Source of the DNA: Neoechinorhynchus agilis
Taxonomy: Eukaryota > Animalia > Acanthocephala
Length of the DNA: 64,000 nucleotides
Assembly (NCBI GenBank): GCA_051530055.1
Contig: CM121343.1
Span: 2,016,389 to 2,080,388 of the forward strand
Direction: 5' to 3'
The translations under genes were made by a program, and so were the position numbers. Under the pieces are notes generated by a model. That model made no database searches. It saw only the letters and a list, made by a program, of their open reading frames with translations, and was not told the origin of the DNA. Of the stretch, positions 2,628 to 57,535 are shown in pieces. Numbering within the stretch: position 1 is the first letter of the stretch; the number at the start of each line of letters is the position of its first letter.

Positions 2628-3915
2628 CACAAATACGGAATGTACAAACTCGGCTAGTATTTTAGCTCGGGGTAAGTGTTGAATTCTTAAATGCTTTTAC
2701 TGGCAAGCCGGTTCTATTGATTCAGATTTAGGAGATTATCATAACACTTCCTTAACAACAACAACACACCAACGCGCTGCCACACCACTACCACAATAAT
2801 CATTGGCACACTCTACATACGTCACCCGTCACCGCAATATTGATCACCACAGACATTCCTTCTCCGGCATCTTTTGTTTTTCCTTCTTGCCATGAAACCA
2901 CACCGATCTCTTACATCACAGAAGTGATTGAATCACTTAGAATCTGATGCATACTGTAAAGAGTTTGTACATTCTTGTCCGGATTCTAAGATACCTCCAG
3001 GAGGCGGGACCCCTTCCTTCAGCGAGGTTTCGTCCCCTTTTTAGTTATGCATCATCGGCGATCGTGGATATTGAACCCTTTGACTCTTAAAACGGGATTA
3101 AAGGCTCAAGTCCACTTGACTTCTTCAGCACAACTACCGAATGTACAAACTCGGCCAGTATTACAGTTCGGGCGGGTATTGAATTCTTAAATGTTTTTAC
3201 TGGCAAGCCGGTTCTATTGATTCAGATTTAGGAGATTATCATAACAATTCCTTAACAACAACACACCAACGCGCTGCCACACCACTACCACAATAATCAT
3301 TGGCACACTCTACATACGTCACCCGTCACCGCAATATTGATCACCACAGACATTCCTTCTCCGGCATCTTTTGTTTTTCCTTCTTGCCATGAAGCCACAC
3401 CGATCTCTTACATCACAGAAGTGATTGAATCACTTAGAATCTGATGCATACTGTAAAGAGTTTGTACATTCTTGTCCGGATTCTAAGATACCTCCAGGAG
3501 GCGGGACCCCTTCCTTCAGCGATGTTTCGTCCCCTTTTTAGTTGTGCATCATCGGCGATCGTTGATATTGAACCCTTTGACTCTTAAACCGGGATTAAAG
3601 GCTCAAGTCCAGTTTACCTTTTCAGCACAACTACGGAATGTACGAACCCGGCCAGTATTTTAGCTCGGGTTAAGTGTTGAATTCTTAAATGCTTTTACTG
3701 GCAAGCCGGTTCTATTGATTCAGATTTAGGACATTCCTTCCTTGGGATTTACAAACTCTTTACCGTATGCATCAGAGTATAAGTGATTCAATCATTTCTC
3801 TGGTGTATGGGGTCGGCGTGGCTTCATGCCAAGAAGGGACACTAAAAAAGCCGAGGAAAGAATGTAATAATCTGAATATATAGAACCGGCTTGCCAGGAA
3901 AAACATTTAAGAAAA
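2628..3915 (-). mobile_element. tRNA-head/hammerhead family locus A: about 2.3 tandem copies of a ~500 bp unit plus an inverted arm at the 5' end
   Basis: gaatgtac(a/g)aac recurs at ~2638, ~3138 and ~3636. The minus strand reads GTAGTTGTGCTGAAG..GGGTTCAATATCC..GGGGACGAAACCTC..GGTCCCGCCTCCTGGAGGTATC. Positions 3745-3915 are an inverted copy of part of the unit (actggcaagccggttc vs gaaccggcttgccag). Confidence 0.85.
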
Positions 3916-4397
3916 TCGATACATGGCTACACTACCAAGTAAATCTTCATTTTTCACATACAGTTCCAAAATGCACCAAATATAGCGATTCAGCAATGTA
4001 ATTTAATTCAAAAAGACATTATGATTAGTTGTTATCCCCTATTGAACCAAAAACAAAGGCAGCTATGAAAATGAAGGCGACGTGAGAAATCACATGATCC
4101 AATGTTACTCGTTTATAATAAAACGCGATCTCACGCGACTTATCCACACCCCATTGATTGCATCGATCTTCATGTAAATCCTAATCATTGTTTAATCGAT
4201 TCGAAAACCATTCCGAGTGGGACATACGAACCGTGTATTTCGCAAGCAGCCACGAAAGAATCGGATAGAAGGCATAGCATTTCTGAAATTACGCTCATTT
4301 AATTATTTTCGTCTTTTGGTAAATATTTCGTGCCGTTTTGTATTTGTAGGCGTTTTTGAAATGTTCGGTGAATGTGAAAATTTGATTTTTTTTTCAG

Positions 4398-7043: not shown

Positions 7044-7269
7044 ATAAAACGACCTGTGTTTTTCACTTATGTTTCTTATAAACACATTTAATAAGGCTAA
7101 TGCTTCTTTTCTAGTGGCTTCACTGCGAAGGAAAACGAGGATCGATCACGAAAATGGTATTTGCGATTTACTTGCTCTGATGTGTTTCTGTATCTAACCA
7201 TTATCGCATTCCGTGCAAGCAAATATTTTTATTTGGTTTATAAAACCTATCAATTTTTGTTGTTTGTTG

Positions 7270-8116: not shown

Positions 8117-8156
<40 letters not shown>

Positions 8157-11100
8157 TACTGTAGGAGTTGTGCGTCCTGGTTGGAGTCTCGGGAAATTGC
8201 CTGAACAATGTGCTTATTTTTTTATCGATGGTTCACTAATAGCACTGCCAAATTGTACGCGTTTCCGAAGGATTCAGCGCTCCTTTGAAGATCTTCCAAG
8301 GAATCACTGGTGATACTGCTAGAATGATCTTCTGTAGAGTTGTGCGTCTTGGTTGGAGTATAATTGCCTGAACAATGTACTTATTTTTATCGATGTTCAC
8401 TAATAGCCCTGCCAAATTGTACGCGTTTTCGGAGGATTCAGCGCTCCTTTGAAGATCTTCCAAGGAATCACTGATGATACTGCTAAGATAGCAGAATATT
8501 CTGTAGAGTGATGCGTCTTGGTTGGGAGTCTCGGGAAATTGTATGAACAATGTACTTACTTTTTATCGATGTTCACTAATAGCCCTGCCAAATTGTACGC
8601 GTTTTCGAAGGATTCAGCGCTCCTTTGAAGATCGTCCAAGCAATCACTGATGATACTGCTAAGATAGCAGAATATTCTGTAGAGTTGTGCGTCTTGGTTG
8701 GGAGTCTCGGGAAATTGCCTGAACAATGTACTTATTTTTATCGATGTTCACTAATAACCCTGCCAAATTGTACGCGTTTTCGAAGGATTCAGCGCCACTT
8801 TGAAGATCTTCCAAGTAATTACTGATGATACTGCTAAGATAGCAGAATATTCTGTAGAGTTGTGCGTATTGGTTGGGAGTCTCGGGAAAATTACCTGAAT
8901 AATGTACTTATTTTTATCGATGTTCACTAATAGCCCTGTAAAATTGTACGCGTTTTCGAAGGATTCAGCGCTCCTTTGAAGAACTTCCAAGGAGTCACTG
9001 ATGATACTGCTAAGATAGCAGAATATTCTGTAGAGTTGTGCGTCTTGGTTGGGAGTCTCGGGAAATTGCCTGAACAATGTACTTATTTTTATCGATGTTC
9101 ACTAATAGCCCTGCCAAATTGTACGCGTTTTCGTAGGATTCAGCGCTCCTTTGAAGAACTTCCAAGGAATCACTGATGATACTGCTAAGATAGCAGAATA
9201 TTCTGTAGAGTTGTGCGTCTTGGTTGGGAGTCTCGGGAAATTGCCTGAACAATGCACTTATTTTTATCGATGCTCACTAATAGCCCTGCCAAATTGTACG
9301 CGTTTTCGAAGGATTCAGCGCTCCTTTGAAGAACTTCCAAGGAATCACTGATGATACTGCTAAGATAGCAGAATATTCTGTAGAGTTGTGCGTCTTGGTT
9401 GGGAGTCTCGGGAAATTACCTACAATGTACATATTTTTTATCGATGTTCACTAATAGCCCTGCCAAATTGTACGCGTTTTCGAAGGATTCAGCGCTCGCT
9501 GAAGATCTTCCAAGGAATCACTGATGATACTGCTAAGATAGCAGAATATTCTGCAAGTTGTACGTCTTGGTTGGAGTCTCGAAGTACTGAACAATGTACT
9601 TATTTTTATCGATGTTCACTAATAGCCCTTCCAAATTGTACGCGTTTTCGAAGGATTCAGCGCTCCTTTGAAGATCTTCCAAGGAATCACTGATGATACT
9701 GCTAAGATAGCAGAATATTCTGTAGAGTTGAGCGTCTTGGTTGAGAGTCTCGGGATATTGCCTGAACAATGTACTTATTTTTTATCGATGTTCACTAATA
9801 GCCCTGCCCAATGGTACGCGTTTGCGAAGGATTAAGCGCTCCTTTGAAGATCTTCCAAGGAATCACTGATGATACTGCTAAGATAGCAGAATATTCTGTA
9901 GAGTTGTGCGTCTTGGTTGGGAGTCTCGGGAAATTGCCTGAACAATGTACTTATTTTTTATCGATGATCACTAATAGCCCTGCCCAATGGTACGCGTTTT
10001 CGAAGGATTCAGCGCTCCTTTGAAGATCTTCCAAGGAATCACTGATGATACTGCTAAGATAGCAGAATATTCTGTAGAGTTGTGCATCTTGGTTGGGAGT
10101 CTCGGGAAATTACCTGAACAATGTACTTATTTTTATCGATGTTCACTAATAGCCCTGCCAAATTGTACGTGTTTTCGAAGGATTCAGCGCTCCTTTGAAG
10201 ATCTTCCAAGGAATCACTGATGATACTGCTAAGATAGCAGAATATTCTGTAGAGTTGTTAGTCTTGGTTGGGAGTCTCGGGAAATTGCCTGAACAATGTA
10301 CTTCATTTATCGATGTTCACTAATAGCCCTGCCAGGTGTGCGTTTTCCAGAAGGATTCAGCGCCCTTTGAAGATCTTCCAAGCAATCATTGATGATACTG
10401 CTAAGATAGCAGAATATTCTGTAGAGTTGTGCGTCTTGGTTGGGAGTCTCCGGAAATTGCCTGAACAATGTACTTATTTTTATCGATGTTCACTAATAGC
10501 CCTGCCAAATTGTACACGTTTTCGAAGGATTCAGCGCTCCTTTGAAGGTCTTCCAAGGAATCACTGATGATACTGCTAAGATAGCAGAATATTCTGTAGA
10601 GTTGTGCGTCTTGGTTGGGAGTCTCGGGAAATTGCCTGAACAATGTATTTGTTTTTATCGATGTTCACTAATAGCCCTGCCAAATTGTACGCGTTTTCGA
10701 AGGATTCAGCGCTCCTTTGAAGATCTTCCAAGGAATCACTGATGATACTGCTAGGATAGCAGAATATTCTGCAGAGTTGTGCGTCTTGGTTGGGAGTCTC
10801 GGGAAATTGCCTGAACAATGTACTTATTTTTATCGATGTTCACTAATAGCCCTGCCAAATTGTACGTTTTCGAAGGATTCAGCGCTCCTTTGAAGGTCTT
10901 CGAGCAATCACTGATGATACTGCAAAATGGCAAATGTACTGTAGTTGTGCGTCTTGGTTGGGAGTCTCGGGAAATTGCCTGAACAATGTACTTATTTTTA
11001 TCGATGTTCACTAATAGCCCTGCCAAATTGTACGCGTTTTCGAAGGATTCAGCGCTCCTTTGAAGATCTTCAAGGAATCACTGATGATACTGCTAAGATA

Positions 11101-14100
11101 GCAGAATATTCTGTAGAGTTGTGCGTCTTGGTTGGGAGTCTCGGGAAATTGCCTGAACAATGTACTTATTTTTATCGATGTTCACTAATAGCCCTGCCAA
11201 ATTGTACGCGTTTTCGAAGGATTCAGCGCTCCTTTGAAGATCTTCCAAGGAATCACTGATGATACTGCCAAGATAGCAGAATATTCTGTAGAGTTGTGCG
11301 TCTTGGTTGGGAGTCTCGGGAAATTACCTGAACAATGTACTTATTTTTATCGATGTTCACTAATAGCCCTGCCAAATTGTACGGCGTTTTCGAAGGATTC
11401 AACGCTACTTTGAAGATCTTCAAAGAATCACTGATGATACTGCTAAGATAGCAGAATATTCTGTGAAGTTGTGCGTCTTGGTTGGGAGTCTCGGAAATTG
11501 CTGAACAATGTACTTATTTTTTTATCGATGTTATCTAATAGCCCTGCCGATTGTACGCGTTTTCGAAGGATTCGCGCTCCTTTGAAGATCTTCCAAGGAA
11601 TCACTGATGATACTGCTAAGATATGCAGAATATTCTGTAGAGTTGTGCGTCTTGGTTGGGAGTCTCAGGAAATTGCCTGAACAATGTACTTATTTTTATC
11701 GATGTTCACTAATAGCCCCGCCAAATTGTACGCGTTTTTCGATGGATTCAGCGCTCCTTTGAAGGTCTTCCAAGGAATCACTGATGATACTGCTAAGATA
11801 GCAGAATATTCTGTAGAGTTGTGCGTCTTGGTTGGGAGTCTCGAGAAATCGCCTGAACAATGTACTTATTTTTATCGATGTTCACCAATTGCCCTGCCAA
11901 ATTGTACGCGTTTTCGAAGGATTCATCGCTCCTTTGAAGATCTTCCAAGGAATCACTGATGATACTGCTAAGATAGCAGAATATTCTGTAGAGTTGTGCG
12001 TCTTGGTTGGGAGTCTCGGAAAATTGCCTGAACAATGTACTTATTTTTATCGATGTTATCTAATAGCCCTGCCAAATTGTACGCGTTTTCGAAGGATTCA
12101 GCGCTACTATGAATATCTTCCAAGGAATCACTGATGATACTGCTAAGATAGCAGAATATTCTGTAGAGTTGTGCGTCTTGGTTGGGAGTCTCGGGAAATT
12201 GCCTGAACAATGTACTTATTTTTATCGATGTTATCTAATAGCCCTGCCAAATTGTACGCATTCAAATTCCAGCATACTTGAAGATCTTCCGAGGAATCAC
12301 TGATGATACTGTTAAGATAGCAGAATATTCTGTAGAGTTGTGCGTCTTGGTTAGAGTCTTCGGGAAATTGCCTGAACAATGTACTTTTTTTCTCGATGTT
12401 CACTAATAGCCCTGCCAAATTGTACGCGTTTTCGAAGGATTCAGCGCTCCTTTGAAGATCTTTCCAAGGAATCACTGATGATACTGCTAAAGATAGCAGA
12501 ATATTCTGTAGGTTATTGCATCTTGATTTGGGGTCATATCGGCACAATCTTATACTTCTTTTTTTATCGATGTTAACTAATAGCCCTGCCAAATTGTACG
12601 CGTTTTCGAAGGATTCAGCGCTACTTTGAAGATCTTCCAAGGAATCACTGATGATACTGCTAAGATAGCAGAATATTCTGTAGAGTTGTGCGTCCTGGTT
12701 GGGAGTCTCGGGAAATTGCCTGAACAATGTACTTATTTTTATCGATGTTCACTAATAGCCCTGCCAAATTGTACGCGTTTTCGAAGGATTCATCGCTCCT
12801 TTGAAGATCTTCCAAGGAATAGCAGATGATACTGCTAAGATAGCAGAATATTCTGTCGAGTTGTGCGTCCTGGTTGGGAGTCTCGGGAAATTGCCTGAAC
12901 AATGTACTTATTTTTATCGATGTTCACTAATAGCCCTGCCAAATTGTACGCGTTTTCGAAGGATTCAGCGCTCCTTTGAAGATCTTCAAGGAATCACTGA
13001 TGATACTGCTAAGATAGCAGAATATTCTGTAGAGTTGTGCGTCTTGGTTGGGAGTCTCGGAAATTGCACAAACAATGTACTTATTTTTATCGATGTTCAC
13101 TAATAGCTTTTCTGGAAGTGTACGCGTTTTTTCGAAAGTTCAGCGCTCCTTTGAAGATCTTCAAGGAATCACTGATGCGTACTGCTAAGATAGCAGAATA
13201 TTGGCAAAGTTGTGCGTCTTGGTTTGGAGTGTCGAAATTGCCTGAACAATGTACTTATTTTTATCGATGTTCCACTAATAGCACAAATTATATGCGTTTT
13301 GAAAGTTCATGTCGCTCCTTTGAAGATCTTCAAGGAATCACTGATGATACTGCTAAGATAGCAGAATATTCTGTAGAGTTGTGCGTCTTGGTTTGAAGTC
13401 TCGAGGAAATTGCCTGAACAATGTACTTATTTTTATCGATGTTCACCAATAGCCCTGCCAAATTGTACGCGTTTTCGAAGGATTCAGCGCTCCTTTGAAG
13501 GTCTTCCAAGCAATCACTGATGATACTGCTAAGATAGCAGAATATTCTGTAGAGTTGTGCGTCCTGGTTGGGAGTCTCGGGAAATTGCCTGAACAATGTA
13601 CTTATTTTTATCGATGTTCACTAATAGCCCTGCTAAATTGTACGCGTTTTCGAAGGATTTAGCGCTCAGCACGAAGATCTTCAAGGAATCACTGATGATG
13701 CTGCTAAGATAGCAGAATCTGTGAGTTGTGCGTCCTGGTTGGGAGTATACAATGTACTTATTTTTATCGATGTTCACTAATAGCACTGCCAAATTGTATG
13801 CGTTTTTGAAGGATTCATCGCTCCTTTGAAGATCTTCCAAGGAATCACTGATGATACTGCTAAGATAGCAGAATATTCTGTAGAGTTGTGCGTCCTGGTT
13901 GGGAGTCTCGGGAAATTGCCTGAACAATGTACTTATTTTTATCGATGTTCACTAATAGCACTGCCAAATTGTATGCGTTTTTGAAGGATTCATCGCTCCT
14001 TTGAAGATCTTCCAAGGAATCACTGATGATACTGCTAAGATAGCAGAATATTCTGTAGAGTTGTGCGTCTGGTTGGGAGTCTCGGGAAATTGCCTGAACA

Positions 14101-14191
14101 ATGTACTTATTTTTATCGATGTTCACTAATAGCCCTGCCAAATTGTACGCGTTTTAGAAGGATTCAGCGCTCCTTTGAAGATCTTCCAAGG
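7907..14191. repeat. 175-bp tandem satellite, ~36 copies, derived from the RT region of the adjacent RTE LINE
   Basis: Unit cactgatgatactgctaagatagcagaatattctgtagag...gaagatcttccaaggaat recurs every 175 nt. The minus strand translates as SLEDLQRSAESFENAYNLAGLLVNIDKNKYIVQ...FCYLSSIIS. Confidence 0.97.
8118..8156. repeat. Poly-C run (39 nt) inside the satellite, probably a sequencing/assembly artefact
   Basis: Pure C homopolymer interrupting a monomer; the flanking monomers are error-rich. Confidence 0.6.
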
Positions 14192-17826: not shown

Positions 17827-18213
17827 ACATCGAAACGTCTTTTATTTCGGGAACGGCGACGATACCAACTTCATTCATTGGACGACCTTGCTATTCTGGT
17901 TTTGCGTGGCGAAAATAATGGTTCAAACACCGCAGCCCAGCAACTTGACCGTCCATATTTTACTGATTTAATGAAGAAAATGCTGACACTCGATCCACAC
18001 GTTCGAATGAGTGCAATTCTTGGATTAGAACATCCATTTTTGACTTTGGATCATTTATTCGCTGAACCCGAATACCTAAAAGAGAGCCGCAATGATATGA
18101 AAGTTTGTTTAATTACAAGCTACCATCATAAACGTCTTCAGGACGAACAGAGACCGTTACTGAATACCTCGTGGCTTATTGAAAATTATAGGGGAACTCG
18201 GCGGAATATTTGA
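17827..18213 (+). CDS. C-terminal fragment of a CMGC protein kinase domain, HIPK-like
   Basis: ERRRYQLHSLDDLA...DRPYFTDLMKKMLTLDPHVRMSAILGLEHPFLTLDHL...ESRNDMKVC resembles HIPK subdomain XI and the sequence after it. No upstream catalytic exons were recognised. Confidence 0.55.
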   Translation, partial: TSKRLLFRERRRYQLHSLDDLAILVLRGENNGSNTAAQQLDRPYFTDLMKKMLTLDPHVRMSAILGLEHPFLTLDHLFAEPEYLKESRNDMKVCLITSYHHKRLQDEQRPLLNTSWLIENYRGTRRNI

Positions 18214-19410: not shown

Positions 19411-19998
19411 ATGGACTATACTGAACCGGTATATGAACACAAACTCGTGAATTGGGTTTTAGCACAGTTTAACGGATTTTTAATAAAGCAGAGATCACCA
19501 ACAAGCAACTTTTTTACTTCGGATATCCCTGTAATAATGAATCTCGTCGCAATTTGTCTCCATGGACGACGGTCGCATCTCAACTTTGTCGCTCATCATT
19601 TATTTGTGTTAACTTTGAACGTAATTGTACATAGTAGCAACTTTGTTCCGCAATTGGCTCATATAAAGTTTCTTATGGAGGTAAGTATTCCCTTTGTTAA
19701 TCTAAGATGGTACCTGAGAACCCATCGAACACTAAAAGGTGAAGTAAAAACAAAAACAGAGTTGGAAAGGATAGATGAAATCATCATTTTCATACTATTC
19801 TTCGCTTTCAGGATATGTCCTATTCCTATTTTCTGGATAATGAGATTTCAAATACAACGTCCTCTGGATCTTCCCTTTTATAGCAACCTTGACTCATTTA
19901 TGACGACAATGGTGATTTGCCTTGATGTACTGAACGCTTACTGGTTTGTGAAAATAGCTGTACCTGCAAAGACAGTCTTTAAACATAAGGAACACTGA
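19411..19998 (+). CDS. TLC (TRAM/LAG1/CLN8) domain membrane protein, TLCD/TMEM56-like; may lack upstream exon(s)
   Basis: HHLFVL, LMEVSIPFVNLRWYL, FFAFRICPIPIFW and LNAYWFVKI are TLC-domain motifs; several hydrophobic segments. Confidence 0.8.
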   Translation: MDYTEPVYEHKLVNWVLAQFNGFLIKQRSPTSNFFTSDIPVIMNLVAICLHGRRSHLNFVAHHLFVLTLNVIVHSSNFVPQLAHIKFLMEVSIPFVNLRWYLRTHRTLKGEVKTKTELERIDEIIIFILFFAFRICPIPIFWIMRFQIQRPLDLPFYSNLDSFMTTMVICLDVLNAYWFVKIAVPAKTVFKHKEH

Positions 19999-21621: not shown

Positions 21622-21739
21622 TCCGTAGAGCCAACGTATTTAAGCTTAATTAGTTCTGTTTTTTGTAATTAAATCCAATTCAAGTTTACTTATAAGCAAT
21701 TGCTCTCTTTAGTACTGGAAATCTTCAGCGAATTCTAAA

Positions 21740-23400
21740 ATGAGAGGTAGGGAATGCCAAAATCTATCACACGTTGATCTTATCGGGTGGAATCCGAAGC
21801 TTCGATGTGTAATCTGGCTTGTTTCCATCAAAAATGGATGACGACTGGATATACGCAGCTTCCATGACCACACGACTGAATCGATCGTGACTTCGTAATA
21901 ACACTTGTATGTTATCAAAATCGATCTGATGTCCAGTATTCACAGCGTGTGAGACCACTGCAGAACTCATGTCACTCTTTCTATTTATCGATCGCTTGTG
22001 CTCTTGAATTCTCCTATTTAGATCGTTCGTTTGTCCGATGTAGACCTGATTACATTCACTACATGGAATCCTGTATACTGATCCAGATTGAGGCTCGCCT
22101 TTTTGTTGGGACAAAGTAGTGTGTAAATTACATCCCTTCCGACAATACACACCTACCAGGGGACTGCTACTTCCTGTTTATAGTGTCCTCTGCATCTTCC
22201 TGAACAAGGATTCATCATGGAAGGGTACCTCTAGGAAAATCTTCGCTTTCTTCACATTAGAAACCCTTCCGTGGCTGTCTCACTCCTTCAAGGCATCTTT
22301 TTTCCAAATGTAGAGGATAACCGAGTCTGCCCGACAAGTCGAACAGAAAATTAAGCTCTTTATCCCGTATAAATTCATCACTACAGTGTGTAAAAGCTCT
22401 GTGAAATAACCATCTAATCCTAGACATTTTTTTTATTTTTGCGGTTGCATTGAACTCCATGGAACAAAACGATGCGGGAAACCATATTTCCTGTACACGC
22501 TCGTTGTGTATGAATTCTCCTTTCGTTTAATGGATACATCGAGAAACGAAAAATATCCTCGTTCCTCAATGTCCATTGTCCACTGTATGTGGTCGTCCTT
22601 ACCATTCAGCTGATTGTGAAGCTCCTCAGGAGACAGGACAGAAGAGTCTAGCAATATGAAGGTATCGTCCACATATCTAACCCAGAATGCGATCCCAGGG
22701 ATGGCCTTTAGGAAATCAGATTCCCATTGCCTCATATATAACTCAGCTAAGATAGGAGCTAGAGGACTTCCCATTGCCAAGCCATCTTTTTGGTCATAGT
22801 CGCATCCCTCGAATCGAAAATTGGAAAATCTGGTACAGAACAGTAAAAGTTTTTTCCAGTCAGTCTTAGTGAGTTTCCATTCATTGTTAAGTGAAAGCAA
22901 AGGAATAGCTAGATTGATTGCACGATTCACATGAATTTTTGTGAAGAGGGACGTAACATCAGCAGAAACCATTGTGTAAGTAGAACCCAAATTAGAGCGA
23001 AGTCTTGATATGAAATCCTCACCATTATCAATAGTATTATCGGAAAATCCCATTATACTACGTAGCATATCTGCTATTTTTCGGGACATATCAGTACAGA
23101 ATGCCGAGTGGGCAGCCACTATAGGTCGAAACATAATAGGATTTTTGTGTACCTTGGCGAGAAGGTATAGTCTGGGCGTTTTTGCATCAGTAGAGCGAAG
23201 TGCTTTATAATCATCAGGAGGAAGCTTCCCTTGATTTTTCAATCTCAAAATAAATGAGTTGAATTCCCTTTCACGACTTTTTGTTGGGCATGTACTGAGC
23301 TGCTCAAACTCATTACCGTTGAGGATTTCACGGCCCGCTTCTCGATATTGTTGTGAATTCGCAATTCCTTGATGTCCCTGAGAAGGTCCATTCCACGCTG
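21740..23400 (-). mobile_element. Penelope-like element (RT + C-terminal GIY-YIG endonuclease), frameshifted
   Basis: RT: TPRLYLLAKVHK..FRPIVA, SADVTSLFTKI, QKDGLAMGSPLAPILAELYM, WVRYVDDTF, FSFLDV..VYRK. Downstream GIY-YIG: GSVYRIPCSECNQVYIGQT...RIQEHKR...SHAVNTGHQIDFDN. Confidence 0.93.
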
Positions 23401-24075
23401 CATTCTCCGGGAGATGTTAGAGTTAACATTCTTATTTTTAATAACTGAATCATACTACTACCTAATTTTTTAGCGGCAGGACATCGAATGCGAATTATAA
23501 TGTGAATGAGATTATTTGTCAAACGAAGTTAAAAAAAGTGGTTTTGTATTGCTCATAATTGATTGTTTTTCAAAGATGTCCCTGTTTATTTTTGTAAAAT
23601 ACTGTAATACGCAATTCAAAGAAAGCAGATTTTTCTAGCACTTGTGTATGTAAATGAAATATTCTTATGTTTCTGCATAAGCGATCTTGTTGTTTTATTA
23701 GAAATACTATAAAACCAAAATGATCGGCAGAAAATGATTAACCCTTTTTATTGTCTCAAAACCGCGTACACGTTGTAAACTAAGTAGAGCTGTCGTTGGA
23801 AATTTTTGACTTAATCTCAATTAAGTTAATCTTTGACAGAACGATTTATTTTAACGCTTTTTAAGTTTCACTCGCTTTGCTTTATAGTGAAAATTCAAAA
23901 GGACTTGTATTGGGTCGTAAAAGGTAAGTTTAATAAGCTTTGTTGGATTCGTCGCAACTTTCAAAGAAAGGTGTTTATTGATGAGATCATCGATATCGAA
24001 GGGCACAGGAGGTTTTCCTTTGTGGTTAAGGTAGGATTCACTTTTCAAAGAACATCAAAAGAGCACCAATTTACG

Positions 24076-28882: not shown

Positions 28883-28937
28883 GAATTCCAGTTCTTAGTA
28901 CAATTAATTTAATGGATCAAGCAAATATTACAAAAAG

Positions 28938-36200: not shown

Positions 36201-37225
36201 AATGAGAAGAGAAAAGGATCCCTTCGAGAAACCCAAATAAACTAAGAGGATCGGACTTTTTTCACCCAAAGATAGCCGAATCCCCAAAAACGAAACCCTT
36301 TAATGAGAAGAGAAAAAGATCCCTTCGAGAAACCCAAATAAAATAAGAGGATCGGACTTTTTTCACCCAAAGATAGTAAATCGACCGAATCCCCAAAAGC
36401 GAAACCCTTTAATGAGAAGAGAAAAGGATCCCTTCGAGAAACCCAAATAAACTAAGAGGATCGGACTTTTTTCACCCAAAGATAGTAAATCGACCGAATC
36501 CCCAAAAGCGAAACCCTTTAATGAGAAGAGAAAAGGATCCCTTCGAGAAACCCAAATAAACTAAGAGGATCGGACTTTTTCACCCAAAGATAGCCGAATC
36601 CCCAAAAACGAAACACTTTAATGAGAAGAGAAAAAGATCCCTTCGAGAAACCCAAATAAACTAAGAGGATCGGACTTTTTCACCCAAAGATAGTAAATCG
36701 ACCGAATCCCCAAAAACGAAACACTTTAATGAGAAGAGAAAAGGATCCCTTCGAGAAACCCAAATAAACTAAGAGGATCGGACTTTTTTCACCCAAAGAT
36801 AGTAAATCGACTTCAACCAAAGATAGTAAAACGACAGATTCCCCAAAAACGAAACACTTTAATGTGATGAGAAAAAGATCGAAACCCAAATAAACTAAGA
36901 GGATCGGACTTTTTTCACCCAAAGATAGTAAATCGACCGAATCCCCAAAAACGAAACACTTTAATGAGAAGAGAAAAGGATCCCTTCGAGAAACCCAAAT
37001 AAACTAAGAGGATCGGACTTTTTTCACCCAAAGATAGTAAATCGACTTCAACCAAAGATAGTAAAACGACCGATTCCCCAAAAACGAAACACTTTAATGT
37101 GATGAGAAAAAGATCGAAACCCAAATAAACTAAGAGGATCGGACTTTTTTCACCCGAAGATAGTAAATCGACCGAATCCCGATGGAGAACTTCCATGCGA
37201 TGGGAAAAATAATCCTTTCGAGAAA
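33290..37225. repeat. 100-111 bp tandem satellite (~37 monomers) with diverged terminal monomers
   Basis: Unit gatag(taaatcga)ccgaatccccaaaaacgaaac(a/c)ctttaatgagaagagaaaa(a/g)gatcccttcgagaaacccaaataaactaagaggatcggactttttcacccaaa. Confidence 0.96.
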
Positions 37226-40300: not shown

Positions 40301-41060
40301 CCATAAAAGATTTCTGCAACAATCACAACTCCATGTCAATTTCTCTAAATGCTTCGAAACAATTCTTTCATTATCCCACAACACCACATCCTACCCCGAT
40401 CTTCCAAATGACATCTCCTTCAGAATTCTGGGTCTTCAATTTTAATCAAATCTAAAATAAGACTAGCAAATTACACTTTCCCTCAAACGCAATACCTTTA
40501 AAATTTACCTACACAAACGCCTCCGCCATTTATGAATCCCTACGCTCGCTCTTTCCCAATTTTACTTCAGCTTTTTTATCCTTCTTCACCTACGACTATC
40601 CAGTCTTTTGCAACCTGTCCAAATCACAAATCCGTCGCCTTTAAATGTTTTATAGAAGATGCTCTAAAATTCTAACAGTTGATGTTTCACCGCTCACTGA
40701 ATGCCAACAAACAAAACCCCTCTCAACCCTGTCACCAAATGTTTTAACTATTTTCAGTCCACTTTTCACATGATCACAACACTCGTAATCCCAATTCCTT
40801 TCATCATCCCTCTACCTCCGCTCCTTTTTCCATGCTGCCCAATCTTCTGGGATATCGAAACCCTAAATGAATCGGAGGAATAAACCAAACTCACAAACTC
40901 TCACAAAAGCACCTGACATTCCCTTCCGACCGAACACGTAATCCACTGCAAAATCAACAACTGCGTTCAGTGAACAAATCTGAATTCAAGTGTTAATGAG
41001 GACCCAAAGGTACGTGGGTCCTATTATTTTTAATTAACAAATAAACGTGTTGTAAATCTT
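37400..41060 (+). mobile_element. Degenerate near-full-length LINE of the CR1/L2/Jockey group (ORF1, APE, RT, 3' stem-loop)
   Basis: ORF1-like KDRNRTIFISEMPE and PRLLKVTF; RT IINLSFLYGIYPSCLKTAKVILVPKK, LQFGF, GVPQGAVLSPLLFNIFLDDL and LYTDDLTL; 3' hairpin aggaccca-aaggtacg-tgggtcct at ~40999-41022. Confidence 0.85.
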
Positions 41061-41065
41061 AAAGG

Positions 41066-41385
41066 TTACTGGCAAGCCGGATCTTTATTATTCATGTTAT
41101 TACATCCCTTCCTCGGCTTTTTGGCATGAAGTTCCGCGGATCTCTTGCCTAACACAGAGTTATAAATACTGGCCGAGTTTGTACATTCCGTGGCTGTGCA
41201 CGAGTCCTGAATCTCTGTTTCAGGGGCAATGTTCGAAAGCCAGTATCGCCAATGAAGCATAATCACAGGGGACCAAATACCGCCGAAACGAGGAAACTCA
41301 CCGATGAGTCTCGCCTCCTCAATAATGAATCTGAGAATCCGGAGGGATGTAACCAAAAAGCCGAGGAAGGGATGCAATAACCCGA
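41066..41385 (+). mobile_element. tRNA-head/hammerhead family locus C: single degenerate copy with 5' inverted arm
   Basis: actggccgagtttgtacattccgtggctgtg..gttcgaaagcc..ggggaccaaatacc..ggaaactcaccgatgagtctcgcctcct..atctgagaatcc. catcccttcctcggctttttgg (~41101-41122) is inverted relative to ccaaaaagccgaggaagggatg (~41353-41374). Confidence 0.8.
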
Positions 41386-41409
41386 ATAAACGTGTTTTTA
41401 TTAAAAAAC

Positions 41410-41630
41410 AAACAGGATAGGGATTTCTTCTCCCACGGAAAATAAATCGACCAAATTCCCAAAAACGAAACACTTTAATGAGAAGAGAAAAGTATCCCTT
41501 CGAGAAACCCAAATAAACTAAGAGGATCGGACTTTTTTCACCCAAAGATAGTAAATCGACCAAATTCCCAATAACCAAACACTTTAATGAGAACAGAAAA
41601 GGATCCCTTGGAGAAATCCAAATAAACAAG
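41410..41630. repeat. Outlying ~2 monomers of the 100-111 bp satellite
   Basis: aaatcgaccaaattccccaaaaacgaaacactttaatgagaagagaaaagtatcccttcgagaaacccaaataaactaagaggatcgg matches the 33.3-37.2 kb array. Confidence 0.9.
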
Positions 41631-43208: not shown

Positions 43209-43434
43209 TGTAAGGAACGAATACCTGCAATTTCTCGACCTATAAGAAACTTGTGTTATGAATGTGCTGGCCGGTAAGGGAAAACTATTCTCGGAAACTT
43301 AAATCTGTTTAAGAAATCTTGGTGCTTTCCTTGACAATCTTTTAAATCTTCAAGTCTAGTCAAATCAACGGTTTATTCGACCAGCCGGTTACTAGAACCA
43401 AAACCATCGCTTCCTACTGTGGTCTGAATAACCG

Positions 43435-46400
43435 GATTTGACTGTAATTTTAAAAGCCAAGTGCTGAAATCGTAAATCTGGAGCGATTTAGCCCAAAGCA
43501 AAATTGGCTGAGTTTGTTGTACATTTCGTAGTTGTCTCGAGGTGGTCTAGTTGATTTGAGTCCGAATTCCATGTTCAAAGGGTTCAGAATCCACGAATTT
43601 GACTGTAATTTTAAAGGGCAAGTGCTGAAATCGTAAATCTGGAGCGATTTAGCCCAAGGCGAAATTGGCTGAGTTTGGGTACATTTCGTAGTTGTCTCGA
43701 GGTGGTCTAGTTGATTTGAGCCCGAATCCCAGGTTCAAGGGTTCAGAATCCATGGATTTGACTTAATTTAAAAGCAAGTGCTGAAATCGCAAATCTGAGC
43801 GATTGCCCAAAGCAAAATTGGCTGAGTTTGTAGTACATTTCGTAGTTGTCTCGAGGTGGTCTAGTTGATTTGAGCCCGAATCCCAGGTTCAAAGGGTTCA
43901 GAATCCATGGATTTGACTGTAATTTTAAAAGCCAAGTGCTGAAATCGCAAATCTGGAGCGATTTAGCCCAAAGCAAAATTGGCTGAGTTTGTTGTACATT
44001 TCGTAGTTGTCTCGAGGTGGTCTAGTTGATTTGAGCCCGAATCCCAGGTTCAAAGGGTTCAGAATCCATGGATTTGACTGTAATTTTAAAGGGCAAGTGC
44101 TGAAATCGCAAATCTGGAGCGATTTAGCCCAAAGCAAAATTGGCTGAGTTTGTTGTACATTTCGTAGTTGTGTCGAGGTGGTCTAGTTGATTTGAGCCCG
44201 AATCCCAGGTTCAAAGGGTTCAGAATCCATGGATTTGACTGTAATTTTAAAAGGCAAGTGCTGAAATCGCAAATCTGGAGCGATTTTGCCCAAAGCAAAA
44301 TTGGCTGAGTTTGTTGTACATTCGTAGTTGTGTCGAGGTGGTCTAGTTGATTTGAGCCCGAATCCCAGGTTCAAAGGGTTCAGAATCCATGGATTTGACT
44401 GTAATTTTAAAAGGCAAGTGCTGAAATCGCAAATCTGGAGCGATTTAGCCCAAAGCAAAATTGGCTGAGTTTGTTGTACATTTCGTAGTTGTCTCGAGGT
44501 GGTCTAGTTGATTTGAGCCCGAATCCCAGGTTCAAAGGGTTCAGAATCCATGGATTTGACTGTAATTTTAAAAGCCAAGTGCTGAAATCGCAAATCTGGA
44601 GCGATTTAGCCCAAAGCAAAATTGGCTGAGTTTGTTGTACATTTCGTAGTTGTGTCGAGGTGGTCTAGTTGATTTGAGCCCGAATTCCAGGTTCAAAGGG
44701 TTCAGAATCCATGGATTTGACTGTAATTTTAAAAGCCAAGTGCTGAAATCGCAAATCTGGAGCGATTTAGCCCAAAGCAAAATTGGCTGAGTTTGTTGTA
44801 CATTCGATAGTTGTGTCGAGGTGGTCTAGTTGATTTGAGCCCGAATCCCAGGTTCAAAGGGTTCAGAATCCATGGATTTGACTGTAATTTTAAAAGGCAA
44901 GTGCTGAAATCGCAAATCTGGAGCGATTTAGCCCAAAGCAAAATTGGCTGAGTTTGTTGTACATTTCGTAGTTGTCTCGAGGTGGTCTAGTTGATTTGAG
45001 CCCGAATTCCAGGTTCAAAGGGTTCAGAATCCATGGATTTGACTGTAATTTTAAAAGGCGCTGAAATCGCAAATCTGGAGCGATTTAGCCCAAGCAAAAT
45101 TGGCTGAGTTTGTTGTACATTTCGTAGTTGTGTCGAGGTGGTCTAGTTGATTTGAGCCCGAATCCCATTCAAAGGGTTCAGAATCCATGGATTTGACTGT
45201 AATTTTAAAAGGCAAGTGCTGAAATCGCAAATCTGGAGCGATTTAGCCCAAAGCAAAATTGGCTGAGTTTGTTGTACATTTCGTAGTTGTCTCGAGGTGG
45301 TCTAGTTGATTTGAGCCCGAATCCCAGGTTCAAAGGGTTCAGAATCCATGGATTTGACTGTAATTTTAAAAGGCAAGTGCTGAAATCGCAAATCTGGAGC
45401 GATTTAGCCCAAAGCAAAATTGGCTGAGTTTGTTGTACATTTCGTAGTTGTCTCGAGGTGGTCTAGTTGATTTGAGCCCGAATTCCATGTTCAAAGGGTT
45501 CAGAATCCATGGATTTGACTGTAATTTTAAAGGGCAAGTGCTGAAATCGTAAATCTGGAGCGATTTTGCCCAAAGCAAAATTGGCTGAGTTTGTTGTACA
45601 TTTCGTAGTTGTGTCGAGGTGGTCTAGTTGATTTGAGCCCGAATCCCAGGTTCAAAGGGTTCAGAATCCATGGATTTGACTGTAATTTTAAAAGGCAAGT
45701 GCTGAAATCGTAAATCTGGAGCGATTTAGCCCAAAGCAAAATTGGCTGAGTTTGTTGTACATTCGATAGTTGTGTCGAGGTGGTCTAGTTGATTTGAGCC
45801 CGAATCCCAGGTTCAAAGGGTTCAGAATCCATGGATTTGACTGTAATTTTAAAAGGCAAGTGCTGAAATCGCAAATCTGGAGCGATTTAGCCCAAAGCAA
45901 AATTGGCTGAGTTTGTTGTACATTTCGTAGTTGTCTCGAGGTGGTCTAGTTGATTTGAGCCCGAATTCCATGTTCAAAGGGTTCAGAATCCATGGATTTG
46001 ACTGTAATTTTAAAGGGCAAGTGCTGAAATCGTAAATCTGGAGCGATTTAGCCCAAAGCAAAATTGGCTGAGTTTGTTGTACATTTCGTAGTTGTCTCGA
46101 GGTGGTCTAGTTGATTTGAGCCCGAATCCCAGGTTCAAAGGGTTCAGAATCCATGGATTTGACTGTAATTTTAAAAGCCAAGTGCTGAAATCGCAAATCT
46201 GGAGCGATTTAGCCCAAAGCAAAATTGGCTGAGTTTGTTGTACATTCCGTAGTTGTGTCGAGGTGGTCTAGTTGATTTGAGCCCGAATCCCAGGTTCAAA
46301 GGGTTCAGAATCCATGGATTTGACTGTAATTTTAAAAGGCAAGTGCTGAAATCGTAAATCTGGAGCGATTTTGCCCAAAGCAAAATTGGCTGAGTTTGTT

Positions 46401-46960
46401 GTACATTCGATAGTGGTGTCGAGGTGGTCTAGTTGATTTGAGCCCGAATTCCAGGTTCAAAGGGTTCAGAATCCATGGATTTGACTGTAATTTTAAAAGG
46501 CAAGTGCTGAAATCGTAAATCTGGAGCGATTTAGCCCAAAGCAAAATTGGCTGAGTTTGTAGTACATTTCGTAGTTGTCTCGAGGTGGTCTAGTTGATTT
46601 GAGCCGGAATCCCAGGTTCAAAGGGTTCAGGATCTATGGATTTAACTGTAATTCTAAAAGCCAAGTGCTAAAATCGTAAATCTGGAGCGATTTAGCCCAA
46701 AGCAAAATTGGCTGAGTTTGTTGTACATTTCGTAGTTGTCTCGAGGTGGTCTAGTTGATTTGAGCCCGAATTCCATGTTCAAAGGGTTCAGAATCCATGG
46801 ATTTGACTGTAATTTTAAAGGGCAAGTGCTGAAATCGCAAATCTGGAGCGATTTACCCCAAAGCAAAATTAGCTGAGTTTGTTATACATTTCGTAGTTGT
46901 ATCGAGGTGGTCTAGTTGACTTGAGCACAAATCCCAGGGTTAGGGATTCAGAATCCATTA
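43435..46960 (+). repeat. tRNA-head family locus D: 161-bp tandem array (~22 copies) of the tRNA-like head only
   Basis: Unit gtacatttcGTAGTTGT(C/G)TCGAGGTGGTCTAGTTGATTTGAGCCCGAATCCCAGGTTCAAAGGGTTCAGAATCCatggatttgactg... with a period of 161 nt. Confidence 0.96.
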
Positions 46961-47345
46961 TCGCCGATGACGTCCCGCCTCCTCGAGAGGTATCTGAGGA
47001 TCCGGACGGGGATATACAAAACCCATAATCGTATGGTTCAGTGTTTTGAATGATTTATTGCGACTCCCTGACCAATAAAACGGTGGGCTGTGAGCCCAAC
47101 GAAAAATAATCAGCCGTGTAAGGGATATTCACTTCAACACTTATAAAATGTATCCGGCTAGCCAGATACTTGCCCCAATCTAGAAACTGGAAAAGTTTAT
47201 ACATTCCGTAGTTGTGTCGAGGTGGTCTATTGGACTTTAGCCCGAATCCCAGGGTCAAAGGGTTCAGAATCCATTATCACCGATGACGTCCCGCCTCCTC
47301 GAGAGGTATCTGAGGATCTCATTGGGGATGTACAGACTCGGAACG
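46961..47345 (+). mobile_element. Continuation of locus D into the full family body (~320-bp unit with internally deleted hammerhead)
   Basis: tcgccgatgacgtcccgcctcctcgagaggtatctgaggatcc occurs at 46961 and (with tcaccgatg) at ~47278. The body matches locus F. Confidence 0.85.
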
Positions 47346-48772: not shown

Positions 48773-48989
48773 ATAACGTTAAGGATGTTTTATATTAAGC
48801 AACTTATCAAACGATACCCAACTTTACGTTTGGAAGTTTCATGGTGTATAATTTAAGCGATCTACAATCACAAAGTTTGATCAGGACGCTTAAATTTTTT
48901 ACGTTATGTAATGTGTGAGCGTTCCTGTCTATATAAAGGATAATTCGTTTTCTAATTGGCGTTACTCCACCCGGCTGATCTGAACACAC

Positions 48990-49135
48990 ATTCCACCGAT
49001 TTATTGGTCAGGGAATCGCATTAAATCACTTAAAACCCTGAACGATACGATTATGAGTTTTGTACATCCCCGCCCGGATCCTCAGATACCTCTCGAGGAG
49101 GCGGCATCGGCGATAATGGATTATGAACCCTAATA
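48990..49135 (-). mobile_element. tRNA-head/hammerhead family locus E (fragment)
   Basis: cggatcctcagatacctctcgaggaggcggcatcggcgataatggatt and tttattggtcagggaatcgcattaaatca are reverse complements of locus D/F sequence. Confidence 0.85.
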
Positions 49136-49470
49136 CCCAAATTCAGCCTTAACCCATTTACACTTAAAAATATAATCGGCTGAGCCACACATAAGCTCAA
49201 ATAATCGGTTTATGCCTTTGTCTAGATCCGTTATATAAATGCCAGCGGCTTTACATTGAAGTATCGTTAATTTGTGATGATCTGACGCCATTTGTATGCG
49301 TGATTGTTCGGATAAGCACAAGGCGGAGAGATATCTGATTGAACCAAGAAGCAATAATTGCTCCTTGTCTTCATCCGCTTCTTTATATTGAAGGTCGGTT
49401 TCACCACAAAAAAGACGGGAATCCACAATTTTCGGTATCTTATGTCAAATTTCTTAATCATTTCCATCAC
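49130..49470 (-). CDS. Unidentified coding-like fragment (frameshifted ORF pair)
   Basis: Two overlapping ORFs with protein-like composition (DSRLFCGETDLQYKEADEDKEQLLLLGSIRYLSALCL...). No family recognised; it ends at locus E. Confidence 0.25.
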
Positions 49471-55627: not shown

Positions 55628-55790
55628 GTGTTTGTTTATGGCGGAAAAATTGAAGGTTTTTTAAATCCGATATTTGGGCATGATTGCGTGCCTAAATTTA
55701 TTAGTTAATAAAAGAAAAAAGGCAAAAGATTGCGCCGAAAACAATCGGATTTAATAAATTCCTTCAATTTTTCCGCCATAAACAAACATG
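55628..55790. mobile_element. MITE-like hairpin element (TIR ~45 bp)
   Basis: tgtttgtttatggcggaaaaattgaagg ... ccttcaatttttccgccataaacaaaca; homologous to the 29.8-32.1 kb satellite unit. Confidence 0.7.
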
Positions 55791-56404
55791 AATAATTCTA
55801 TCTTGAAACAAATATAATCATTAAAGTTAAAAACACGTTATAACCAAAATTTTAATGCTGAAACGTGTGTATTTTCGGATCCGTGGACGGACGATTTTTG
55901 ATATAAAAAAGCTGTAACCGACTCAAGTCAAATTAGAAATATTTTACCATTTAAACCTTCTTTTGAAGTATCGTTGTAAATTTTCGTCATTTCACAAAGA
56001 TTTTTAAGACATAGAGGGAATCAGTAAGGTTTATCACTAAATCCACAAATATACGCAGTTATCAAAAAGCAATAGTTATCTGTAACAGACGAAAATCAAA
56101 TGAATCGTGCCCGAAATGGGAAATGTTTTGAGCTTCAATCCCATTTCGTCTTCTAATGAAAAAAAAATTTTGAACTGTTGAATTGTCTCGTAAAAAAATA
56201 GATAGTCAACGTGTTTAAAATTCACGTAGGAAAAATGTACACTATTTTTTATTAGAGTTTTGGTGATAATAATTTCGTGACGATTAAACACTTTTCCGCT
56301 CACTAAAACCTTACAAACAGTGACTTCGCGATCCGAGGGATTATGATCACCACAACATCGCCAACTGTTTCATCCCCATGGATTTTCTCTCGGTGATTAA
56401 TATT

Positions 56405-56525
56405 TTTTTTATTAAATATCTATGTACGGCCTTTTTCACGGTTGATAATTTTCCTTGGGCACACATCCGACCCAAATTATCAGCCGTGATAAAAAAAGCC
56501 GCACATAGATACTTAATAAAAAAAG
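56405..56525. repeat. Imperfect ~120-bp inverted repeat
   Basis: tttttattaaatatctatgtacggcc..cacggttgataattt pairs with aaattatcagccgtg..gccgcacatagatacttaataaaaa. Confidence 0.75.
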
Positions 56526-56699
56526 TTACCGGCTGGATAGACTTCAAAAATATATTTTTATCTTCTCTTATTTCGAAGCTTCTAGAGGACCAATGGGGAA
56601 ACGCATGAATTCCTTTAAAGGGCACTATTTCGTTAAAAATATCAAACGGTTCAGAATGCACCATCATGAATCGATACGGGCTCCGGTGTTTCGGAGAAA

Positions 56700-57535
56700 A
56701 GTTTTTATCTTATGTCTGGTTAGCCGGATAAACTTTTTTAAGTGTTGAAATGAACATCCCTTAAAAGGCAAATAATTTTCTTTGGGCTAGGGACGTACAA
56801 AACCCATAATCGTATCGTTCAGGGTTTTAAATGATTTAATGCGATTCCCTGACCAATAAAACGGTGAGCTATGAGCCAAAGGAAAATAATCAGCCGTGTA
56901 AGGGATATTCACTTCAGCACTTAAAAAATGTACCCGGCTAGCCAGATACTTGCCCCAATCTAAAAACTGGAAAAGTTTATACATTCCGTAGTTGTGTCGA
57001 GGTGGTCTATTGGATTTGAGTTCGAATCCCAGGGTCAAAAGGTTCAGAATCCATTATCGCCGATGACGCCCCGCCTCCTCGAGAGGTATCTGAGGATCCG
57101 GGCGGGAATGTACAAAAGTCGTAATCGTGTGGTTCAGGGTTTTAAGAACACCACAAAAAACCAACCACCCCCCAAACAACTGATTTAATGCGATTCCCTG
57201 ACCAATAAAACGGTGAGCTATGAGCCAAAGGAAAATAATCAGCCGTGTAAGGGATATTCACTTCAGCACTTAAAAAATGTACCCGGCTAGCCAGATACTT
57301 GCCCCGATCTTAAAACTGGAAAAGTTTATACATTCCGTAGTTGTGTCGAGGTGGTCTATTGGATTTGAGTTCGAATCCCAGGGTCAAAAGGTTCAGAATC
57401 CATTATCGCCGATGACGCCCCGCTTCCTCGAGAGGTATCTGAGGATCCGGACGGGAATGTACAAAAGTCGTAATCGTGTGGTTCAGGGTTTTAAGTGATT
57501 TAATGCGATTCTCTGACCAATAAATAGGCGGGCCG
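56700..57535 (+). mobile_element. tRNA-head/hammerhead family locus F: ~2.3 tandem units of ~325-360 bp with 5' inverted arm
   Basis: cattccGTAGTTGTGTCGAGGTGGTCTATTGGATTTGAGTTCGAATCC..ccgatgacgccccgc(c/t)tcctcgagaggtatctgaggatcc occurs twice (~56985, ~57335). Positions 56710-56790 are an inverted copy of ~56875-56950. Confidence 0.88.

Follow-up and report, generated by a model that had tools for sequence, protein, structure and literature searches.

Schistosoma repeats known as Sm-alpha and Sj-alpha are tRNA-derived elements resembling short interspersed nuclear elements (SINEs) that carry a hammerhead, and tens of thousands of copies of the Sm-alpha hammerhead were recovered when the Rfam hammerhead motif was used as a blastn query (PMC2770079). 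Metazoan retrozymes of the type without long terminal repeats (non-LTR retrozymes) are non-coding tandems of 150–450 bp with low GC content and a hammerhead in every monomer; their target-site duplications (TSDs), if there are any, exceed 4 bp, and a non-LTR retrotransposon is their suspected partner (PMC7229834). One review treats retrozymes as a kind of SINE (PMC7761336). Insertions of Penelope-like elements (PLEs) combine partial tandems with a 5'-truncated copy in inverted orientation and are extended on one side (PMC8557442). Non-circularly permuted hammerheads of the types SGC, CSG and GCS have been described from metatranscriptomes and bacteria and shown to cleave, type GCS being known from one bacterial sequence without covariation support (PMC10085705). 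Here we describe a family of tRNA-headed repeats carrying hammerhead-like blocks in a 64-kb stretch of the acanthocephalan Neoechinorhynchus agilis (contig CM121343.1, positions 2,016,389 to 2,080,388; hereafter the window), which was read together with 28 kb of other N. agilis sequence.

A first-pass annotation of the window had proposed a tRNA-headed retrozyme system at six or more loci, with multimeric transcripts cut to monomers, copied by a Penelope reverse transcriptase (RT) and later decayed into satellites. Our data support a single family of retroelements that are non-coding and begin with a tRNA-like head. The explanation that we favour, as a probable but by no means secure one drawn from sequence comparison, is a decayed family of short, SINE-like and Sm-alpha-like retroelements with a tRNA-like head and hammerhead blocks in the order G-C-S, inserted in the manner of PLEs and descending from a founder whose hammerhead would have been functional.

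Results

One repeat family at six loci

Self-BLAST of the window showed that the six named loci, A to F (Table 1), are mutually homologous, with E values of 1e-8 to 1e-160 overall and of 1e-8 to 1e-50 across loci, and revealed no further family members in the 64 kb. The sense strand is the minus strand for A, B and E and the plus strand for C, D and F. The parts common to the loci are the tRNA-like head and a module of ~95 nt. The proposal that the same head and hammerhead remnants recur at all six loci thus held as far as homology on both strands is concerned, but not in full: locus E keeps only the 3' part of the head, the 22 D monomers contain no hammerhead remnant, and E, F and Dend (the F-type units that continue the D array) lack one of the three hammerhead blocks, block G. 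The arrays and their differing monomer lengths were confirmed by Tandem Repeats Finder (TRF) with units of 497, 175, 161 and 349 bp, the last of these, at locus F, representing a 315-bp unit plus a 34-nt insert.

Every locus was mapped onto a reference unit, the 498-nt sense consensus of locus A. A full unit consists of four parts, namely the tRNA-derived head of ~75 nt, the ~95-nt module, a 14-bp inverted repeat (GAATGTACAAACTC / GAGTTTGTACATTC) and a variable body that the inverted repeat brackets. In locus A the units contain all four of these parts, with the hammerhead blocks in the module, and in addition a foreign insert of 120 nt. This insert (2737-2851 and 3237-3348) is an independent repeat, present also at 3643-3758 of a further sequence from the N. 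agilis contig (L001) with 81-84% identity and there without surrounding family sequence. The first unit of locus B is 5'-truncated within the head. The D monomer is composed of reference positions 465-497 and 3-67 (head) plus ~60 nt specific to it, and it contains none of the hammerhead blocks. Locus F is ordered as an inverted piece, a partial unit, two units that are 98.7% identical and another partial unit. Exactly where the two near-identical units join (57146-57180) lies the 34-nt C/A-rich insert (AACACCACAAAAAACCAACCACCCCCCAAACAAC), which is not present at other unit junctions.

A scan of metagenomes with the most conserved 18-mer of the family returned chance matches only, two N. agilis loci scanned for further copies held small fragments only, and an exact look-up of the open reading frames (ORFs) of the window in public data gave no match.

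A worn tRNA-like head

ARAGORN at default settings found no tRNA gene in the window, and the Rfam tRNA model gave no match there at gathering score or at E<=10, so that the head falls below the Rfam tRNA threshold. With the ARAGORN threshold lowered to 90%, the sole matches on both strands of the 64 kb were the seven B heads, all on the sense strand and called tRNA-Ser(cga); at 85% the F heads were added, plus six presumably false matches. In a box search, both the A and the B box proved perfect in the B unit, where they lie 44 nt apart and a T4 run is absent; F has one mismatch in each box, and the boxes of A and C are more decayed. From these sub-threshold matches and the boxes we conclude that the head, as judged by sequence, is a worn tRNA derivative of the SINE style, whose best copies retain the RNA polymerase III (Pol III) boxes A and B. 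The proposed tRNA-like character of the head is therefore upheld, though below default ARAGORN and Rfam thresholds.

Penelope-style insertion layout

The perfect 12-bp repeats flanking C and F (Table 1) lie exactly at the homology borders of these loci, and each 12-mer occurs only twice in the window; the empirical chance of a repeat of at least 12 bp was 0.003 per locus. At locus F the TSD spans the inverted piece and the 2.x tandem units jointly. Neither a poly(A) tail nor terminal inverted repeats were found at the family copies, which end in ...AATAACCCG and ...CATCCTTA, sequences that are neither A-rich nor simple repeats. Copies were thus inserted discretely, with 12-bp TSDs and no poly(A).

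On the 5' side of the direct copies, a 5'-truncated piece stands in inverted, head-to-head orientation at loci A, C, E and F; B and D yielded no such piece. The outer end of these four pieces falls at one unit position, 7-20 nt after CCGGCTWGCCAG, with those of E and F ending alike in ACATAAG. In locus A the inverted piece points its own 3' end (position T) outwards. By analogy, A, C, E and F are laid out in the way of Penelope-like insertions, and the Penelope-style character claimed by the first-pass annotation was supported by partial tandems with an inverted piece at these four loci and by 12-bp TSDs at C and F.

The RT plus GIY-YIG Penelope element that had been placed in the window is real according to Pfam (RVT_1 3e-11, GIY-YIG 1.3e-7, in the order RT then GIY-YIG) but proved to be a truncated and broken fragment of 1.7 kb, lacking its 5' part and containing stops and frameshifts. 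No hammerhead was detected in it by Rfam or by a descriptor accepting the blocks in any order, and no pseudo-LTR, the copy being 5'-truncated. A search of public data with the Penelope RT found no close relative. As a candidate link between family and fragment we considered a shared 13-mer, CATTTWAGAATTC, near both 3' ends; it was rejected as not significant (Smith-Waterman (SW) p ~0.1). The sequence link to a Penelope element was accordingly not obtained with the one degraded fragment compared.

Hammerhead blocks in the order G-C-S

Blocks were defined after Eckert et al. 2023: block C comprises the stem I 3' side, CUGAnGA and the stem II 5' side, block G the stem II 3' side, GAAA and the stem III 5' side, and block S the stem III 3' side, H17 and the stem I 5' side (PMC10085705). 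Loci A, B and C hold all three, in the order G-C-S and not the classical C-G-S, as the series GGGAC-GAA-AUACCUC ... CUCA-CUGAUGA-GUCCC ... GAGGUAU-C|UGAG. The combination CUGAUGA-GUCCC...GGGAC-GAAA is the stem II signature of schistosome and newt hammerheads. The stretch listed for block S in Table 1 is the best conserved of the whole family.

Every copy in the window has inactivating ribozyme lesions, and these differ between the loci, as the first-pass annotation had stated. All B units have lost G8, A9 and 10.1-10.3 by one common 5-nt deletion while keeping stem III (7/7) and stem I (4/4). Locus C keeps stems I and II, and stem II is complete (5/5) in A and C; locus A has lost the core of block C, and in E, F and Dend block G was removed by a deletion that has a CCGATGA repeat at either border. 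The lesions of the different loci complement one another, and the three intact stems never occur together in one copy.

The any-order descriptor yielded no match in the window or in two N. agilis loci. In contrast, a reconstruction from the locus majorities passes it, with stems I/II/III of 4/5/7 bp, A15.1-U16.1 and C17, and a predicted cleavage site GUAUC|U. In 400 dinucleotide shuffles of the window such matches arose at a rate of 0.03 per 128 kb, which for a 100-nt module, allowing 40-800 ways of choosing locus states, corresponds to roughly p = 0.001-0.02. The hammerhead claim thus stands insofar as the pieces are present with locus-specific lesions, but recognition was possible only for one block at a time, and the order of the blocks is non-classical. 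Rod-like circular folding was modest (z = -2.7 for B and -2.1 for A; D and F not significant), and Rfam found no other ribozyme in the whole window and three sub-regions at gathering score or E<=10.

Two other readings of the blocks were discarded. A type II hammerhead built from GGGAC-GAAA...CUGAUGA-GUCCC would leave only 7 nt for stem I. A second junction found in all subfamilies (CCGAUGA / CCCGCC-GGCGGG / GAAU / GUACAAAC stem) deviates everywhere at two invariant core positions and has no stem I. Separately, the family terminus CCGGCTAGCCAGATAC is complementary at 12 of 16 positions to block S and its flank (GTATCTGAGGATCCGG); it could pair with the region of the predicted cleavage site, and the complementarity may be due to chance.

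A possible origin of the block order

Upstream of block G lies a decayed CCGAUGA, and downstream of it a hairpin, CCUCG/CGAGG, together with CGAGGAAAC|UCAC, which resembles block S (GGAGGUAUC|UGAG). The composite G-C-S probably arose, on this sequence reading, from two tandem type I hammerheads by complementary loss, the first keeping block G alone and the second keeping blocks C and S. In a direct reading of the alignment, block G is intact in B (15/15), whereas the redundant relics, CCGAUGA and CGAGGAAAC|UCAC, are ~40% decayed, which suggests that the composite was once under selection. The founder might have folded within one unit as a pseudoknotted permuted ribozyme of type GCS, or as a nested type I hammerhead in a multimeric Pol III transcript, with block C of one unit joining blocks G and S of the next; this two-unit fold, free of a pseudoknot, was predicted to lie within 3 kcal/mol of the minimum free energy.

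A bolder extension, which we regard as rather doubtful, is that the founder had a working G-C-S hammerhead made by complementary loss, the first non-circularly permuted one in an animal genome, and that intact copies elsewhere in Neoechinorhynchus release monomeric or circular RNAs that are copied by a Penelope-like RT.

Self-cleavage, mobility and competing explanations

In the model that we prefer, the family would have inserted by target-primed reverse transcription with a Penelope-like RT/GIY-YIG enzyme acting in trans, and the founder hammerhead would have been functional; later F-type lineages would have lost the ribozyme but gone on transposing, and the B and D lineages would have been amplified at the DNA level into satellites after ribozyme loss.

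A live or recently live retrozyme, in which Pol III multimers are cut by the hammerhead to monomers, possibly circular, and copied by a Penelope RT so that the arrays are direct products, would be in keeping with the presence of all three blocks, with a head that retains its boxes in a B unit lacking a Pol III terminator, with monomers of 161-497 bp and a GC content of 39% within the range of metazoan retrozymes (PMC7229834), and with the Penelope-like layout. However, the seven B monomers share one 5-nt core deletion and the 22 D monomers have no ribozyme, indicating that both arrays grew after ribozyme loss, without self-cleavage and not by the cutting of multimers. Likewise, recent mobility appears independent of self-cleavage because C and F, with their intact and perfect TSDs, lack a working ribozyme. 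No copy or array end coincided with the predicted cleavage site in the mapping to the reference unit, and the link to the Penelope fragment is missing. We therefore consider a live retrozyme unlikely. Self-cleavage was not needed for the events visible in the window; it may have mattered for the founder. The origin of the arrays by cutting, as originally proposed, was thus not borne out, and of the decay into satellites there remains the expansion of the B and D arrays after the ribozyme had been lost.

An ordinary tRNA-derived SINE moved by a long interspersed nuclear element (LINE) and later amplified in a satellite-like manner, with the hammerhead strings due to chance or irrelevant and the inverted pieces due to twin priming or nesting, appears to us similarly improbable. 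Such an origin would agree with the tRNA-like head, with 12-bp TSDs as in LINE target-primed insertion, with the negative Rfam result and with the LINE-like RT at 24076-25600, and at locus C the inverted piece has its outer end (reference 451) next to the 5' start of the direct copy (reference 464), the geometry of twin priming. Yet twin priming predicts variable sites, whereas the outer end is common to four loci; the copies have no poly(A) or simple-repeat tail; and the composite hammerhead is improbable by chance according to the shuffles. A 3' tail shared with a LINE, which the first-pass annotation had named as evidence against its proposal, was not found, BLAST showing no similarity of the family to the LINE fragment or to any RT-bearing fragment in the window. 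A repeat propagated at the DNA level without an RNA intermediate, be it a satellite, a foldback or miniature inverted-repeat transposable element (MITE), or a tandem carried by a Helitron or Helentron, would account for the large tandem arrays and the sub-terminal inverted repeats (37 bp in C, 55 bp in F), but is very improbable, as TSDs of 12 bp are longer than usual for DNA transposons and Helitrons make none, 5' truncation occurs at variable points, and the ends of neither class were found, the inverted repeats being internal or asymmetric with two ends that differ by 45-55 nt.

Several observations also weigh against our preferred reading of a Penelope-inserted family with a once functional hammerhead. 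The TSD-bearing copies C and F are precisely copies without a working ribozyme, and loci A, B, D and E yielded no TSDs. In C, E and F the direct copies stop on their outer side at reference ~255-275, 45-55 nt short of terminus T, which strains a simple Penelope model, since that would place both outer ends at the 3' end of the element. Furthermore, the inverted pieces are only ~81% identical to the adjoining direct units, and the family has no significant similarity to the Penelope fragment of the window.

The same holds for the ribozyme itself. Rfam matched no hammerhead in the window or in sub-regions of 0.4-0.9 kb at gathering score or E<=10, and none of the ~15 copies contains a complete one. 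A descriptor permissive enough to be passed by the real B copies was not significant (6.7 matches per shuffle), so that the case for a hammerhead stands on the reconstruction from three loci. It is there that the complete core is seen, with U4 contributed by B: this position is U in B only, and C in locus C and all F-type copies, so that the core of the founder was perhaps CCGAUGA, which is inactive. Stem I measures only 4 bp, and compensatory covariation was found in none of the stems. It may be that the blocks are what is left, in scrambled form, of two classical hammerheads and that they never worked in G-C-S order.

Surroundings of the family

The window has a GC content of 39% and is rich in tandem arrays, about one third of it being satellite DNA. 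At 8118-14191 a run of 39 C directly precedes a 175-bp satellite with 34.8 copies, whose unit contains a canonical CTGATGA, a 6-bp hairpin (CTGCTA/TAGCAG) and GAAT. We considered this satellite (8159-14191) as a family member for its CUGAUGA and hairpin, and other satellites of the window as well; neither it nor they were significant against shuffles or matched the any-order descriptor. A 100-bp satellite at 33415-37180 (33 copies, with higher-order variants of 133/235 bp) recurs at 41400-41500, directly downstream of locus C. Unrelated tandem arrays lie at 30069-32128 (units of 222/461 bp) and 60649-61337 (195 bp). The long near-perfect hairpin at 59538-59657 was matched by Rfam MIR9408 with E = 2e-5 but reached only 43 bits where the gathering score is 90; it is probably a repeat of the foldback or MITE-like kind and not a microRNA gene.

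Among coding remains, a TLC-domain exon lies at 19411-19998 (Pfam 3e-15), with an N. agilis protein match for 19411-19995; N. agilis CM121343.1 has a region, paralogous or allelic, that is 96% identical to it. The ORF at 17878-18213 terminates in a motif reminiscent, by eye, of a kinase C-terminus; Pfam gave no match. Rearranged blocks of other N. agilis CM121343.1 sequence, from another locus or haplotype, align with the window at 94-97% identity.

Table 1. Positions of the family, its parts and the reverse transcriptase fragments. Positions refer to the window, or to the 498-nt reference unit where marked "ref".
Feature	Position	Strand	Description
Reference unit, head	ref 1-77		head + CCGATGA
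Reference unit	ref 78-120		segment restricted to A, B and C
Reference unit	ref 119-168		best-conserved block, then GAATGTACAAACTC
Reference unit, body	ref 157-276		body
Reference unit, insert	ref 277-398		specific to A; independent repeat also in N. agilis
Reference unit	ref 399-451		stretch containing CCGGCTTGCCAG
Reference unit	ref 455-498		GAGTTTGTACATTC-CGTAGTTGTG
Locus A, direct units	2628-3735	-	2.2 units of 497-498 bp (TRF 2628-3735, 497 bp x2.2; BLAST to reference unit)
Locus A, inverted piece	3747-3913	+	head-to-head, 5'-truncated; ref 157-443 without the 120-nt insert
Locus B	27603-28885	-	7.3 units of 175 bp (TRF 27603-28869, 175 bp x7.3; BLAST); head + hammerhead module only
Locus C	41052-41384	+	single insertion: inverted piece 41052-41154 (minus sense), then direct copy
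Locus D	43434-46958	+	22 units of 161 bp (TRF 43434-46958, 161 bp x22; BLAST to reference unit)
Dend	46959-47345	+	F-type units continuing the D array; block S, block C-like CCGAUGA-C-GUCCC, no block G
Locus E, direct copy	48961-49160	-	5'-truncated, F-type: 3' part of head, block S, body
Locus E, inverted piece	49161-49195	+	head-to-head, ends ...CCACACATAAG (SW score 36; reached by 0/1000 shuffles)
Locus F	56709-57564	+	one insertion: inverted piece 56709-56790 (minus sense) + direct units (TRF 56832-57495, 349 bp x1.9)
B heads	27618-27689, 27793-27864, 27967-28038, 28142-28213, 28314-28385, 28488-28559, 28663-28734	-	ARAGORN 90%
Representative B head	28488-28559	-	A box TGGTCAAGTGG, B box GGTTCGAATCC (ARAGORN 90%; box search)
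F heads	56995-57063, 57344-57412	+	ARAGORN 85%
TSD of locus C	41040-41051, 41385-41396		perfect 12-bp AATAAACGTGTT
TSD of locus F	56697-56708, 57565-57576		perfect 12-bp AAAAGTTTTTAT
Block G, one B unit	28631-28646	-	GGGAC-GAA-AUACCUCG: stem II 3' side, G12 A13 A14, stem III 5' side
Block C, same B unit	28606-28617	-	ACUCA-CUGAU//CC: stem I 3' side, C3-U7 kept
Block S, same B unit	28581-28598	-	GGAGGUAU-C|UGAG-AAUCC: stem III 3' side, cleavage-site C17, stem I 5' side
Locus C, block G	41268-41283	+	G12>C
Locus C, block C	41295-41312	+	CCGAUGA-GUCUC, U4>C
Locus C, block S	41325-41340	+	stem III 3' side replaced
Terminus/block S complementarity, locus F	56933-56949 vs 57086-57102; 57282-57298 vs 57435-57450		
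Penelope-like fragment	21723-23459	-	RT ORF 22433-23248, then C-terminal GIY-YIG ORF 21767-22150
LINE-like RT (RVT_1) fragments	24076-25600	-	shared by N. agilis locus L001 18610-20354 at 96% identity

Discussion

New here are the phylum of the host, the insertion of a tRNA-headed element in Penelope style and the non-classical order of the blocks. If our reading is true, the Sm-alpha type, a tRNA head joined to a hammerhead, extends to a second parasitic phylum, and the insertion architecture ties a tRNA-headed element to Penelope-like retrotransposition, the partnership suspected for animal retrozymes. Duplication followed by complementary loss would then represent a concrete route to non-circular ribozyme permutation, and the family a natural candidate for the type GCS order, of which there is only one doubtful bacterial example so far. 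Transposition and satellite formation after ribozyme loss would bear on the question whether mobility requires the hammerheads or they travel as passengers.

The closest known elements are Sm-alpha and Sj-alpha, followed by the metazoan non-LTR retrozymes. Like the present family, Sm-alpha is short and non-coding, has a Pol III-type tRNA head and a hammerhead, and occurs both dispersed and in satellite-like form. Its stem II, GUCC/GGAC with CUGAUGA and GAAA flanks, is similar, and its hammerhead is active. In contrast, Sm-alpha carries a contiguous classical type I hammerhead, whereas the blocks described here are ordered G-C-S, have no Rfam match and are defective in all copies; the tRNA parent is Ser-like by ARAGORN and not tRNA-Gln, and the hosts belong to Acanthocephala and Platyhelminthes, respectively, the comparison being one of described features.

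The unit lengths of 161, 175, 315/349 and 497 bp and the window GC content of 39% recall retrozyme repeats. Retrozymes, however, possess an intact type I hammerhead and abundant circular RNAs, while this family has a permuted dead ribozyme and a tRNA-like head, and the functional type I hammerhead of each retrozyme monomer is absent in D and defective elsewhere. The classical type I order carried by retrozymes, Penelope-like elements and Sm-alpha is not that of the blocks found here, which argues against the earlier retrozyme interpretation. With tRNA-derived SINEs the family shares an A/B-box head, a length of 160-500 bp, TSDs and 5' truncation; it differs from them by its lack of a LINE-derived tail or an A-rich or microsatellite 3' end, by its complex inverted-plus-tandem insertions and by its hammerhead blocks.

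In insertion structure the nearest counterparts are non-autonomous PLE derivatives such as MRC1 of Chlamys (PMC8557442), which likewise show partial tandems, an inverted 5'-truncated copy on the 5' side, a one-sided extension and no poly(A), and whose multicopy head-to-tail insertions resemble those seen here. These derivatives share their 3' end with an autonomous family, a link not found here with the one PLE fragment in the window; no tRNA-like head has been described for them, and in the present family the two outer ends of an insertion lie at different unit positions. In ribozyme architecture, finally, the comparison is with the permuted types of Eckert et al. 2023. Those come from metatranscriptomes and bacteria, whereas the host here is an animal retroelement, all copies are damaged and the ribozyme is predicted from sequence. 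In the locus-majority reconstruction the core nucleotides and three stems of types SGC, CSG and GCS are nevertheless seen, in a block order impossible in the classical types I-III; G-C-S and the validated type SGC fall into one rotation class (Eckert et al. 2023).

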